A program made the position numbers and the translations under genes. Below are positions 18,201 through 36,200 of a DNA stretch of 64,000 nucleotides, piece after piece; position 1 is the first letter of the stretch; the number at the start of each line of letters is the position of its first letter. Source of the stretch: Botryllus schlosseri (Eukaryota); contig CM119384.1 in the NCBI GenBank assembly GCA_051294905.1, forward strand, positions 10,540,001 through 10,604,000, written 5' to 3'. The notes below the pieces were generated by a model. That model was given only the letters and a program-made list of their open reading frames with translations. It made no database searches and was not told the origin of the DNA.

Positions 18201-21200
18201 TTTGTCACTACTCCTACTTATACTTAAGTAGCTTTCTCGACAACTTTGACCACCTCTGGTAGACAGTAGCCTTACTATTCCTTGTTTGCATTTTGCATGA
18301 ATGAAAAACTTGGATGCATAATTGCCCTTCTCTTTTACTCACCCCTGTCCTTTGGTCTTCAAAATTATTGTTGGGTTATTGGTCTTTTCACGTTGTGACT
18401 AGTCATGCAGTGGTGAACAATATCAAGTACTTCGTTTTTCCTTCGCACAGATTCATTCAAAGTCAGGTTCTGCAATACCTTGACGCAATAATCTCTTTAT
18501 GAAGCATCTTTTCAGTGCAGCAAATGATGTAACAGACTCGGAAGTGGCGCCAGTAAGCCGGTCTCTGATATAGCCCATATGTCTTGATAAAATTTGAATA
18601 TCTTTGCAGGAAGTTCTAACGGAAGCGGAAATGTTTTGTAAAACCTTAATAGTACTCCTTTGATCTTTTCGAAGGATGGATTCGTTTGATGTAGAGATTG
18701 TAAAGATTGTTCATATGTCACAGATACAGCAGTTGATTGATTAATGGGCTTGAATGTTGCTCAGGCGCTTACCGTGTGCAATTCTCTTTAGATGCATGCC
18801 CAATGTGATGGATCTACTTGCCTAGTACTTGTAATGATTGTAAAGGTAATCGCTAATATCGTAACAGGTTCCGCGTCGGAGGAGGTCTTGAAAGACATGA
18901 TGTCCTACGCGAAAGACACCCAGCACGAGAAAATCATACGTGGACTGGCGGTGGGCATCGCGTTGGTGATGTACGGCCGAATGGAGGAAGCCGACACGCT
19001 TATTGAAACCCTAAAACGGGATAAGGACCCGATTTTAAGAAGAAGCGCAATGTACACTGTCGCTATGGCGTATGCGGGGTCGGGCAGCAATAAAGGAATC
19101 AAGAATTTACTTCATGTGGCGGTAAGTGGCTTGTCCTGCTACGTGTCGACTATAGCCCGTGGGATTACGGTCGCTGTTGATTTAGGGAATTATCCGTATG
19201 TGCTTACGTGTAGTGCAAAGAAGAGATACACAGTAGGATGTAGCGCCTGATACATTATCACAACAGTCCTGGGCTCCATACTTGATGGGCTCACAGTATT
19301 TGTTGGTAGTTGCTACAGTCATTTTTTACATTGTATGATCACAAAAACTTGACAGCGCACTTGCTGGGTCTGATTCACAGCTGGGATTCATTTACTTTCC
19401 GGTATCTTATTTGTGACGTCCAATGTTAGATTTGGGTGTTTGGTCTCAACTTAATCAGACGTGGTCAAAACTAGTCATTGTTGGTACTCACGTAGAAGTA
19501 GAGTCTTAAATTCTCAACTACCAGTAGACGTTTTGTTTTCCGAGTAAGTAAAAAATAGATATTCTAGGCCAGGGGTCGCCAACTCAAAAAGGGTCGCGGG
19601 CCGCAAGAATGCAATATCGAGACAAAAATGGCTACACTTTTAGCAACCACGTTTTAAAAACATTTACATCAGTACAACGCCGTGCTCTTCAACATTTGCG
19701 ACGGGCATATTTCCAACAAAAGAAGTAAGATTTTATTAAAGAAATGCAAATTCAAGAATGCAACTAAAATCATCAATTTTATGATTTTGAAATATGAGCT
19801 GCAACCTGATACCTGACAACGCTTTTCACCAACTAAGGAATCGATATCGAGGGTAACGAGACCCTGTACCAGCTGAAACACTATCTCCCCGTAAAACTTG
19901 ATCTTGTGGAGATCACTGAGCCCTTTTGTAAGCGTCTCGGTCTTAGCAGTATCTTGGCCATTGCACGTCATGGCAATTTGCCCATTCCCCATTCCTATCG
20001 GGTGATTCTCCCTCGATGGAATGCTGTGGCCATCGCCGAGGCCGTTTCACCTAGTGAGTAATAGTGATGTTCTGCACAGGAGAATAGCTTATTTTGAAGC
20101 AGCGACAACAATATTTTGAAACTGGAATCAATTTCAGCATTTCAAATGCTTTACTTGGCATTCTTCGAAAATCTGAAATCAGGTTGCGGGCCGCAAAATA
20201 TGACCACTGTTCTATGCCTAGTTTTGCCAAAAAACGAATCTGCTATGTAGACGTGGAAGTAGTCTAAAATCATGACCAATGACGCAAAACCTACTTGGGA
20301 ACTCTGATAAAGTGGAAGTACTTTGTCGCTGACCACCTCTGCCTGCGGGTTCATGGACAGATTGGAAATTGCAGCTAACATTTGTTGATATTGTGCCCGT
20401 GGCTTGAATATGCTCTTTGCAGAATAATTACATCTACCGTAGTGCTGTGCCAGATTGAAAATGTCGACAGATTTAATGTTTCTGCTTGCAGGTGTCTGAT
20501 GTGGATAACGACGTGCGCCGCGCCGCTGTCGAGTCTCTGGGATTTCTGATGTTCAGGTTGGGTTTTTTAATTTTGGTACCATTGTCACAGAAAATGTTTT
20601 GAGAAGGTGGTTGAGGTGTCGTCTCTAGGCACGTAAAGAAGCACATAACAAGACAATGACACATTTAGTAAACCGGAGGGGAAACAGTAAACGCACACCC
20701 ATGACAGTTGTAACGAACGACACATTCCTGTTGGCACAGTTATTCAGGTTTTTCAACTGACTCTCATCGGAAGCGACCGCCAGTAAACGTGGACATTAGA
20801 ATTCTAAATTTAAATACGAAATAGACAGTGTGATGTAAAAATGGCAGAAAAAAAAACGATTCACCACGTTTACAAGGAGGCGAAATACATATTGGCTGTA
20901 ATACGTATCCAAAGACAACACTAATAAAATGCTCAGAAAATATGGAGGCGGTCCTTTTGTTGACAGGATATCTGATGTTTGAGTGTTCTAATAATTGATT
21001 TGAGAACGAGCAAGAATTGACATCAGCTATCATGGTAGGATTTCTCACACTATAGACACGTTGTATAACCTATTGCAGAGCTACATGCGATATTCGACTT
21101 GTGTATCAGTAGAAACTTATCTGGTATCTGCATGCATATGACAGTGTGTGTTAGGAGGCTGGTCACGTAGACCTTCATGCTTGTCACTGCATTCTATTCT

Positions 21201-33200: not shown

Positions 33201-36200
33201 TAAAACGCAGTTACTTTAAAGACATTTTCGAGTGTGTGCGTACGACGCGATGGCGCGCTGTTGTTCTAGCGCTGAGTTCTACAGATTAGGGTGCTTCATA
33301 AATCATAGCGTTTTGAAGTCCTGCGGAATGATATCTGCGCAGTATGTTGGTAACTTCGGCCAGCGCGTATCTGCCGACTGGGTGACTTTGCGGATTAGGG
33401 GGTTGGAGTCGGGCAGACACTGATTAGAATGAACGCGCGTAATTGGCCGAAGAAATTATGCCCGCGCTGATGCAGCGAAAAACTAACCGATTAGCGCCCG
33501 TGTCTAGCATTGCGAACATATTACCTGTTGATAAGACGGATTTCAAAAGTATGGTATCGGGTATTACCGCGCTCCGTCATTATGATACACTATCAAATGT
33601 TTGCGTACGGTGGGATACCCGATCCGCATGTTTAAATAGTTGTAATTGCACACACAACTAGCATTCTTAAGCCTTTGAAGTCTTTCTGATCACGCCAGCT
33701 TTATGTGATAGTTTATCCTGCTGTAAAATCCATTTCGCGTAGTTAACCTCTTTGATTACACCACATGACACTGGCGCCGGATCTGGTATTTCCGATTGCG
33801 CATGGTACCCTTTGCGTATCTTTCCTGAGATATCGTGTTTTATCGCCGCATCCAGTCTGCGTATGATTAGCTCTGGCCCGCGCTTCGAAACCGAAGGATT
33901 GCTACATCTCTTCGCTGGAAAAACATGTCATACGCGGACCTGCTCGGCTAACTCTGAGATTGTAATCTCTTGTGCTACACTTTCGCCAATATTTCTGCTG
34001 TCACTATAACACGGATCCTTTTCATTTTTACAACGGAGATTTTCCTCCGTGCCGCCTTTCTCTTTCACTCTATCTCACCTTATATACTTATGTCTAATAC
34101 GCGATATAAACGGCATGAGTCGCAAAATCGCATGTAGTCAGATAGCGCGTTTCAACTCAACCCGGCTATTGTATGTCTTCTCATACGTTTCGCCTACTCC
34201 TATCGAAATCCCAACACGGGGCCATTGTTACCGAAAGTTGGCTCGTCGTGGACTTAACGAAACCTGTGTGCTTTTCGCGCGTTCGATTGCATCGATAAAT
34301 CGGACTGAATTCCTTGTTCAAACAGTCCTTTATCCTAGGCTTGCCCGCGACCTGAAGAGCGCTAGAGCTCCCGCGTTCGCAGCGCGTTGCGGGGCCGTAT
34401 TTGCGACGCCATTTTCTTACAAATCTACTTCGTGAACTCTCTAATCACTGGCAGTCTCGTATGCGTTGGCGTCAAAACTTCAACTTTTCCGTACCGGGTC
34501 ATGCGCGCTCCCCGGCGTCCCGCTTAACAGTGTTTCAAGTTTTGGCACGCTCATACTAACGCGATATTGGAAATTCCCAATTGCCTTTAACCTGATATCC
34601 ACGGATTAAATACTTGTCGGTACACTCTCTAAACTGGAATAGAGGATGGTTAGTTGGTTACGTTTGCTTGAACACTTTGTTGTCTCGGTTCACATGTTGT
34701 TTTAGCGAATTCCCGCACTGTTCAGAGAGAAATACGGCCTTTTCAACTCGTCTCCAACAATGTTGCTAGGGACAACGTGTATTTTTGTTCCAGTGATTCA
34801 CATGGGATTTTCTTTCTGTACCTGAATGAAGTGGTCCACCGTTGAGAGCCTTTTTGAGTAGTCTCAACGACGAGTCGTGCTAGTAAAATGTGTATCCCGA
34901 TAACCGCAAAACACGACCCTGATGGGACTCGAACCCACAGTCTTCAGCTCCGGAGGCTGACGCCTTATCCATTAGGCCACAGGGTCGAACGCCCGCACAA
35001 GTGGATTTGAGAGATTCTATACTTACGGGTGTCTCGTTTTATTCGCGCATTGCTGAAAGCGAAGCGCGTTGCTTATCGATTTGCTGTTTTCTCGTAATGC
35101 GGTTTACTACCTTCACCTCGTGGCGACGCTATGCCCGATATTGAATAGGTTTATTTATTGCCATGCTTCTGTGGGAGTTGTTTGACTTCGATATTCGAGG
35201 ACTAAGGCTCTCAAATATTATGCTTATGCTGTTACATGTTTACACTATCTTCACAGATTCCACTAGGGCCTAATAATATGGATGTGTATTTCAATATTAT
35301 GAAGATGCACGAATATTAATGCAAAGACATCACCTATGATTTATTATGATGGCACGAGCTTGAAAGACTCAACAAGTATGCTGCTAAATCTGGTCCCACG
35401 CAATAGGCCTACTCCGCACATGTTGTAAACCGATACCACAAACTATAAATAGATGATATAAACCAATTCCACCATAACAACTAAAACTACAGTATTTCAT
35501 TGATATTTCAGATACTGGGGCTCTGTATTAACGTAGTGGCGTTGGCCGTTGTCTGATGTTTTTACATTAACATGTGAACGATTTCCAAGTACATTCAAGA
35601 AGTTCTGCAAAGATTTCCAAGTCTGAAATCACCCACTTACCCAGCTTGAATATTACAACACTGGCAAATGCTATGTGCTCCTAGTTTGGTTTTAATCGTA
35701 AAAACAGTGTAACGTCTGTATTGGAGTTAGTACAACTTGGTTTTGAACAAGACTGTATTATTACAGGACACCTGAACAATGCCCAAGCGTTGTCTCGTTG
35801 CTGGCAGAGAGTTACAATCCACACGTTCGTTATGGTGCGGCGATTGCCCTCGGAATAGCTTGCGCCGCCAGTGGCAGTAAGGTAAGCTGTTGTCGAAAAA
35901 ATATTTAAAAACAAATATTATATGATGCGGTATATTCAGGACGCATTGGGCTTGTTGGAGCCGTTAACGATTGACTCGGTCAATTACGTTCGACAAGGTG
36001 CACTGATTGCGTCGGCGATGATATTGATACAGCACACAGTGGGAACTTGCTCCAAGGTGACTATTGGCAGATGGCTTTCTTCCTGCACGAAAGATATGAA
36101 ATTTTGGGGGCGTTGTCAAAGCCCTTTGAATAGAACTGATAAAATTTATTTAGATAAAAAAAGAATGTTAATTGCTAACATTGGTCGGTTACCTGAAATG

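Follow-up and report, generated by a model that had tools for sequence, protein, structure and literature searches.

A 5-HT2-type receptor gene lies antisense within the longest PSMD1 intron of Botryllus schlosseri, in the intron that hosts such a gene in gar and starfish

We analysed a 64,000-nucleotide stretch of the Botryllus schlosseri genome (GenBank assembly GCA_051294905.1, contig CM119384.1, positions 10,540,001 to 10,604,000; hereafter the window, whose own numbering is used throughout) and found that the longest intron of the proteasome gene PSMD1 contains a complete, intact gene for a serotonin receptor of the 5-HT2 type on the opposite strand. We consider this host-guest pair orthologous to the vertebrate PSMD1/HTR2B nest, with a probability of about 0.85. 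The guest is expressed and spliced, and its host intron interrupts the same PSMD1 codon in the same phase in the window, in spotted gar and in crown-of-thorns starfish; a single origin of the nest would account for this identity.

The human PSMD1/HTR2B nest lies at 2q37, and the vertebrate nest is known from annotation. For humans, the literature that we searched yielded only an indirect statement of it: a table of single-nucleotide polymorphisms labels one variant as an intron variant of 'HTR2B, PSMD1' (PMC5562334).

One intron takes up half of PSMD1

The window, eukaryotic DNA from a 495.5-Mb genome, is free of gaps (no runs of N) and has a G+C content of about 42%. Using tblastn with the PSMD1 proteins of Nematostella, shark and hagfish, together with a splice-site search, we modelled PSMD1 (Rpn2) on the forward strand at 10583-40336, with 21 coding exons that specify 973 amino acids (aa) over a coding span of 29.75 kilobases (kb). 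The modelled protein is about 60% identical to, and collinear with, cnidarian, arthropod, mollusc and vertebrate PSMD1 over about 960-1,000 aligned positions, and is 57-59% identical to amphioxus PSMD1. The gene is single-copy in the 495.5-Mb genome, as judged from one exon that, used as a query, returned one match. In the region 10480-10600 (forward strand), the earliest recognisable coding exon opens at an acceptor, TTGTAG/ATCGTG (slashes between letters mark exon boundaries), and has no in-frame ATG; the start codon therefore probably sits in an exon further upstream.

Nineteen of the PSMD1 introns measure 58-2,130 nucleotides (nt). The remaining one, at 20557-35766, is a phase-2 GT..AG intron of 15,210 nt that makes up 51% of the coding span, in agreement with the initial annotation, which had described a single 15,210-nt phase-2 intron covering about half of the gene. 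Its donor reads ATGTTCAG/GTTGGG at 20556/20557 and its acceptor TTACAG/GACACCTGAACAA at 35766/35767, the letters around the latter being TTACAG/GACACC. Exon 13 of the model (20492-20556, forward strand) ends ..VESLGFLMF followed by the AG of an arginine codon, and exon 14 (35767-35881, forward strand) begins with the G of that codon, giving the protein junction ..LGFLMFR/TPEQCPSVV.. across a codon split AG/G. Since the two flanking exons align with residues 605-629 and 626-667 of human PSMD1 in phmmer searches of the proteasome structures in the PDB, the split codon is the equivalent of human Arg628.

The intron contains a complete, spliced receptor gene on the minus strand

Most of this intron is taken up by a receptor gene of nine GT-AG coding exons on the minus strand, which together form an intact open reading frame of 691 aa, from a methionine codon at 33043 to a stop codon at 23416-23418. 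The stop codon lies 2.9 kb from PSMD1 exon 13 and the start codon 2.7 kb from exon 14, leaving the guest wholly inside its host intron. Exons 1-7 and the six joints between them are present in spliced transcript contigs from three independent studies (X15, X16 and X19; region 27050-33049); all six joints read CT..AC on the forward strand and hence GT..AG in the gene's own direction. At 27096 a loose end of the transcript contigs continues into exon 8, and the two remaining junctions were placed by homology and splice signals. Thus the complete antisense 5-HT2-type gene proposed by the initial annotation is borne out by its reading frame, its nine exons and its spliced transcripts.

The exons follow the architecture of the protein, all on the minus strand. 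Exon 1 (32947-33043) encodes the initiator methionine and a glycosylation-rich N-terminus; its joint to the next exon, 32590/32947, is found in X15 and X19, and in X19 the 5' untranslated region runs on upstream of 33049. Exon 2 (32390-32590), delimited by transcript joints, encodes transmembrane segments TM1 and TM2. Exon 3 (31220-31402) encodes TM3 with D3.32 and the DRY motif, and is preceded by a phase-1 intron three codons ahead of W3.28, as in gar HTR2B. Exon 4 (31048-31152), preceded by an intron of only 67 nt (31153-31219), encodes an insert in intracellular loop 2 and the first half of TM4, and ends ..VWGVSLG in phase 1, again as in gar HTR2B; its joints, 31152/31220 and 29296/31047, were seen in three runs. 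The end of TM4, extracellular loop 2 and TM5 are encoded by exon 5 (29033-29297), defined by transcript joints and PDB matches. Intracellular loop 3 is divided between exon 6 (27725-28078), an unconserved stretch whose joints 28078/29033 and 27234/27725 were seen in three runs, and exon 7 (27099-27234), which ends ..IATEQRASK and was located by motif scan and by the contig loose end at 27096. Exon 8 (24611-24741) encodes TM6 with the motif FWCPFF; it was reached from that loose end, its junction being set by homology and splice signal. Exon 9 (23416-24019), supported by PDB matches and the reading frame, encodes TM7 with NPCVY and a long C-terminal tail that ends ..RVRVFV before the stop codon.

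Intracellular loop 2 (31048-31402, minus strand) has about 29 residues more than that of gar HTR2B, the distance from DRY to W4.50 being 54 residues rather than 25. This insert is interrupted by the 67-nt intron and is backed by the transcripts of all three studies. A TM3-TM4 junction of 31249/31088, which would have given a loop of normal length, was ruled out; the transcripts give 31220/31152. Because intracellular loop 2 contacts the G protein, G-protein coupling of the predicted receptor may differ.

The host intron has two further occupants. In the receptor's TM4-TM5 intron lies a foldback element resembling a miniature inverted-repeat transposable element (29494-29728), whose 60-nt inverted arms show 82% complementarity. 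RNA contigs and raw reads contain it in extreme abundance, in either orientation and with many variable flanks, marking it as a repeat family present in many transcripts. Between the 5' end of the receptor gene and PSMD1 exon 14 lies a tRNA-Arg(CCG) gene (34913-34987, minus strand), found with Rfam at 69 bits and by ARAGORN too.

Could the nest be an artefact, that is, a misassembly that joined a receptor locus to PSMD1, or a dead receptor copy? We found no point in support of this, and it is scarcely credible: the window is without gaps, the reading frame is intact, and transcripts were spliced in three studies. DNA sequencing runs, of which the best may be from the source sample, contain up to 96% of the words sampled, and the same architecture recurs in other species.

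The guest is a 5-HT2-type receptor

Stop-free stretches on the minus strand of the host intron carry every landmark of an aminergic G-protein-coupled receptor (GPCR), and the 691-aa product has seven transmembrane segments with D3.32, DRY, the CWxP-type motif FWCPFF and the NPxxY motif NPCVY. Searched singly against all PDB chains, four of four exons ranked human 5-HT2A, 5-HT2B or 5-HT2C first. The TM1-2 exon scored 57-63 bits with 5-HT2C, 5-HT2A and 5-HT2B, against 43.7 for the next family, and the TM5 exon 53-59 bits with 5-HT2A and 5-HT2C and 33-41 with 5-HT2B, against 30 for the next family (D3). Margins were narrow for the TM3 exon, where 5-HT2A and 5-HT2C scored 55-59 bits, D1 53.9 and 5-HT2B 45, and, beyond 5-HT2B itself (34-37 bits), for the TM7 exon, where 5-HT2A and 5-HT2C at 28.6-31.2 bits overlap 5-HT1D at 30.3. 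The TM3 exon is also the sole strong 5-HT2-type match genome-wide, and it is from this one exon that we judge the receptor to be single-copy.

Gene structure agrees with these matches. The coding regions of vertebrate 5-HT2 genes are interrupted by two conserved introns, the first following TM2 and the second lying in TM4, and the window receptor keeps both at the positions seen in gar HTR2B: the window receptor is split ..MIIN/NYNWP and ..VSLG/ISLPLP, gar HTR2B ..VLFN/SSWP and ..ISIG/IALPIP, all in phase 1. The starfish gene described below has the first of the two, after TM2, likewise in phase 1.

In a phylogeny of 53 receptors rooted on 5-HT1A, from which HTR2C and further aminergic outgroups are absent, the window receptor and the vertebrate HTR2A and HTR2B clades formed an unresolved three-way split with a support of 97 in the Shimodaira-Hasegawa-like approximate likelihood ratio test (SH-aLRT); the 5-HT2-like receptors of echinoderms, hemichordates, lophotrochozoans and arthropods fell outside this group. 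The branch leading to the window receptor is long (2.04). The exon searches, the two shared introns and the tree (SH-aLRT 97) thus all place the receptor among the 5-HT2 receptors, as the initial annotation had supposed. Given the long branch and the receptors covered by the tree, we go no further than to read it as a receptor of the 5-HT2 type that is older than the vertebrate paralogs.

Gar and starfish have the same nest in the same intron

The spotted gar PSMD1 locus (L001) spans 52 kb, and its gene table shows one antisense 7tm_1 gene inside it, of 498 aa. This gar guest shares 83-86% identity with Amia HTR2B in coding exons two and three and 66% in the first, ends ..LLLTENEGGKQEQVSYV and falls in the HTR2B clade. 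Its host intron, of 25,980 nt where the next-longest gar PSMD1 intron has 4,044 nt, interrupts PSMD1 at the same codon and in the same phase as in the window: ATGTTCAG/GTACAG at the donor and TTGCAG/GACTCCAGAG at the acceptor. The upstream gar exon ends ..IGFIMF plus AG, and the next restarts TTGCAG/G followed by ACTCCAGAG, which encodes TPEQ. A host intron at a different PSMD1 codon would have implied independent insertion in the two lineages.

In the crown-of-thorns starfish, Acanthaster planci, one intron of the PSMD1 gene (L003), 14,536 nt long, agrees with the window's host intron in codon and phase, and this intron contains an antisense two-exon 5-HT2-like gene (L003 12028-14278, minus strand) that the gene calls of the assembly had missed. 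The starfish guest is 72-80% identical to a Patiria receptor named '5-HT2A-like'. In all three species the split arginine codon stands after ..F and before TPEQ, reading AG/G in the window, AG/G in gar and AG/A in starfish.

The position of the host intron is common to the window, gar, starfish, amphioxus and the annelid Owenia in our map of PSMD1 introns. Indeed, for 18 of the 20 PSMD1 introns in the window, some other animal has an intron no more than two alignment columns away, and it is this otherwise strong conservation of intron positions that indicates true homology of the host introns.

An alternative to common descent is convergence, in which 5-HT2-type genes would have arrived in this one PSMD1 intron separately in tunicates, vertebrates, echinoderms and other lineages. 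Convergence would suit the patchy distribution of the nest, which is lacking in amphioxus, a lineage that branches between echinoderms and the vertebrate-tunicate group, and long introns make larger insertion targets. Against this, codon, phase, antisense orientation and receptor family are identical in the three lineages verified at the DNA level; with about 20 introns and two orientations to choose from, two extra independent entries into the same site would have odds of about 1 in 1,600, even granting entry into PSMD1. The length of the intron is moreover due to its guest and not the reverse, because the emptied copies of amphioxus and Owenia measure only 214 and 482 nt. Nor are the guests retrocopies, since they are multi-exon genes with conserved introns. 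Taken together, these points make convergence very improbable.

The nest predates the vertebrate duplications and probably the bilaterian ancestor

The initial annotation had proposed that the nesting predates the vertebrate genome duplications; the starfish nest, found in the same intron at the DNA level, makes it older than that. Beyond gar and starfish, the lamprey (Lampetra fluviatilis), acorn worm (Saccoglossus kowalevskii), scallop (Pecten maximus) and horseshoe crab (Tachypleus tridentatus) loci, each larger than 100 kb, were examined through gene tables only, which place their guests within the PSMD1 range. Within this range lie one antisense 7tm_1 gene in lamprey (516 aa) and two antisense GPCR genes of this family in each of Saccoglossus (530 and 499 aa), scallop (838 and 568 aa) and horseshoe crab (691 and 479 aa). 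The 499-aa Saccoglossus guest has the same length as a receptor named '5-HT2B-like' (P0281), and their contigs are of equal size. Limulus has two 5-HT2-type genes (P0454 and P0328) on contigs of identical size, 394,733; in the receptor tree, P0328 and the gene of the wasp Chelonus insularis form a deep clade of their own. Together with the loci that have two guests, this suggests an old tandem guest pair. Identical contig size further links PSMD1 to a 5-HT2 gene in Chelonus, where each is on a contig of 247,153 bases, and in Ptychodera, Glandiceps and Tubulanus, where the contigs are of chromosome scale.

Five other animals lack the nest. Amphioxus has an 11-kb PSMD1 gene in which the same intron is present, as a comparison of intron positions established, and is empty at 214 nt. 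Owenia likewise has no nest and an empty copy of the same intron (482 nt); in Capitella there is no nest and the host intron itself is absent. In Lottia gigantea there is no nest, and PSMD1 (L006 1001-4015, 977 aa) has no intron in its 3 kb; the gene has the look of a retrocopy that took the place of the original, which would be one way in which a nest can be dissolved. Nematostella PSMD1 has neither the nest nor the host intron. Three adjacent PSMD1 introns (alignment columns 670, 709 and 748) are common to bilaterians and absent in Nematostella, which has one at column 728; because this trio is missing there, the host intron may be a bilaterian gain.

Comparison of these loci gives solid grounds for placing the nest before the deuterostome ancestor, a single origin being the simplest history for it. 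It probably also predates the bilaterian ancestor, in which case several losses would have followed. Some observations weigh against so old and single a nest. The protostome and lamprey guests, and one of the two Saccoglossus guests, are known from gene tables alone. The lack of a nest in amphioxus, Owenia, Capitella, Lottia and Nematostella means that a single origin needs at least three or four independent losses. Finally, the exact tree positions of both the window receptor and the window PSMD1 are uncertain because both are long branches: both proteins are fast-evolving, in a locus whose shortest introns are about 60 nt, and in two PSMD1 trees the window sequence was a long branch unplaced inside Bilateria, standing in the first of them beside plant, alga and rotifer sequences through long-branch attraction.

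For vertebrates, the initial annotation had read the HTR2B locus as the ancestral position. A better wording would be that HTR2B alone kept the ancestral arrangement, HTR2A and HTR2C being presumed duplication copies whose host copy would have been lost.

Passive entrapment may suffice to keep host and guest together

PSMD1, a single-copy gene for an essential subunit of the 26S proteasome, is transcribed on the forward strand, and its longest intron holds the whole receptor transcription unit. That unit, the genome's only gene for a 5-HT2-type receptor, has a promoter of its own, runs along the other strand and has its nine exons spliced together. The likeliest reason for the retention of this arrangement is passive entrapment, in which the guest and its regulatory DNA would be held inside an intron of an indispensable gene. 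Host and guest could be parted only if the guest were cut out precisely, with two clean breakpoints within the intron, or if the host were retrocopied, so the nest could persist without any functional coupling. The intronless PSMD1 of Lottia looks like the retrocopy route out of the nest.

Retention might instead be functional, as the initial annotation suggested with shared regulation or transcriptional interference: the enhancers of the guest and the host could form a regulatory block, or antisense transcription could tune one gene by the other. Such a role would fit the very long retention of the pair in many lineages. Conserved microsyntenic pairs typically include a long-introned bystander gene (PMC3514665), and in C. 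elegans a nested gene induces its host as a by-product (PMC12274878). However, amphioxus, two annelids and a limpet have lost the nest, and the emptied intron persists in amphioxus and Owenia, which indicates that host-guest coupling is not obligatory, and in human and mouse most host/nested pairs have neither a positive nor a negative expression relationship (PMC11694760). The bulk RNA run that we inspected (X23) does not help the functional case either; its receptor reads are near nil, and it is uninformative on strand or expression level. We regard functional retention as unlikely. A more far-reaching version, in which the pair has been bilaterian-wide for more than 550 million years, the Arg628 intron is a bilaterian novelty that possibly arose with the guest, and a functional tie (enhancer sharing, or antisense control of the receptor by its ubiquitously transcribed host) has kept the two together, seems to us more doubtful still.

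The emptied intron of amphioxus and Owenia, the lost intron of Capitella and the intronless host of Lottia are natural experiments on the relation between nesting and expression. The nest can also serve as a positional orthology marker for 5-HT2 receptors: sequence alone makes the invertebrate members difficult to assign, and their automatic names span 'dopamine D2-like' to 'octopamine receptor'. It singles out HTR2B as the vertebrate paralog that retained the ancestral genomic context, and it brought to light a receptor gene missing from the annotation of the crown-of-thorns starfish.

Neighbouring genes and other observations

On the 3' side of PSMD1, exons of a gene resembling the MAGUK p55 (MPP) family lie on the forward strand at 46500-52000, with PDZ, SH3 and guanylate-kinase-like stretches. 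Elsewhere in the genome, a glycosyltransferase-2 match is followed, 3.3 kb downstream on its own strand, by a glycoside-hydrolase-6 match (C9:15025585-15029719, minus strand), and a second such pair lies nearby (C9:15068570-15088831, minus strand), a pattern that resembles tunicate cellulose synthase. Among animals, the pairing of glycosyltransferase-2 with glycoside-hydrolase-6 is the known signature of that tunicate enzyme. Along with the grouping of the receptor with vertebrate paralogs, the fast evolution of both genes and the short introns, it marks the genome with fair confidence as that of a tunicate.

Comparison with known nested and linked gene pairs

Our full-text searches turned up no paper on the PSMD1/5-HT2 synteny, whether on a nest outside vertebrates or on the identity of its host intron; the pair may nevertheless sit in large microsynteny tables. 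Matches to 'PSMD1' together with microsynteny turned out to be PSMD14 and Psmd11, and neither PSMD1 nor HTR2B is named in the supplements of PMC8851819 or in the main text of PMC3514665.

The window shares with the vertebrate PSMD1/HTR2B nest the host gene, the phase-2 intron at Arg628, the antisense orientation, the guest family and the guest's two coding introns, and in both the host intron is by far the longest of the gene. They differ in that the window receptor predates the split of HTR2A and HTR2B and has, relative to vertebrate HTR2B, six extra introns, about 29 additional residues in intracellular loop 2 and an intracellular loop 3 of far greater length. The window locus is also compact, with a host intron of 15 kb against 26 kb in gar, while the whole lamprey gene takes up 145 kb.

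Nested protein-coding pairs that span phyla are rare, and the textbook case among them, synapsin-TIMP, is also the closest described precedent. There, TIMP lies antisense in one synapsin intron from cnidarians and flies to humans, was lost in nematodes, and is present in more than one copy in some lineages (PMC2825198). Both systems thus have an unrelated antisense guest in one host intron and lineage-specific loss, and the multiple TIMP guests are paralleled by the two guests in PSMD1 of acorn worm, scallop and horseshoe crab in the gene tables. In contrast to the neuronal synapsin host, PSMD1 is a housekeeping gene; synapsin-TIMP extends to cnidarians, whereas in Nematostella both the nest and the host intron are missing from PSMD1; and three SYN-TIMP pairs survived the vertebrate duplications as against one PSMD1-HTR2 pair.

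A second likeness is to the conserved ancestral microsyntenic pairs and genomic regulatory blocks of Irimia et al. 2012 (PMC3514665), in which a tissue-specific gene has likewise stayed linked for hundreds of millions of years to an unrelated, broadly expressed 'bystander' with an unusually long intron. That model demands enhancers of the guest in the introns of the bystander, whereas the PSMD1 nest is known here from gene structure. PSMD1 and a neuromodulator receptor gene appear to have been locked together from a time before the deuterostomes radiated, and probably from the bilaterian ancestor onwards.

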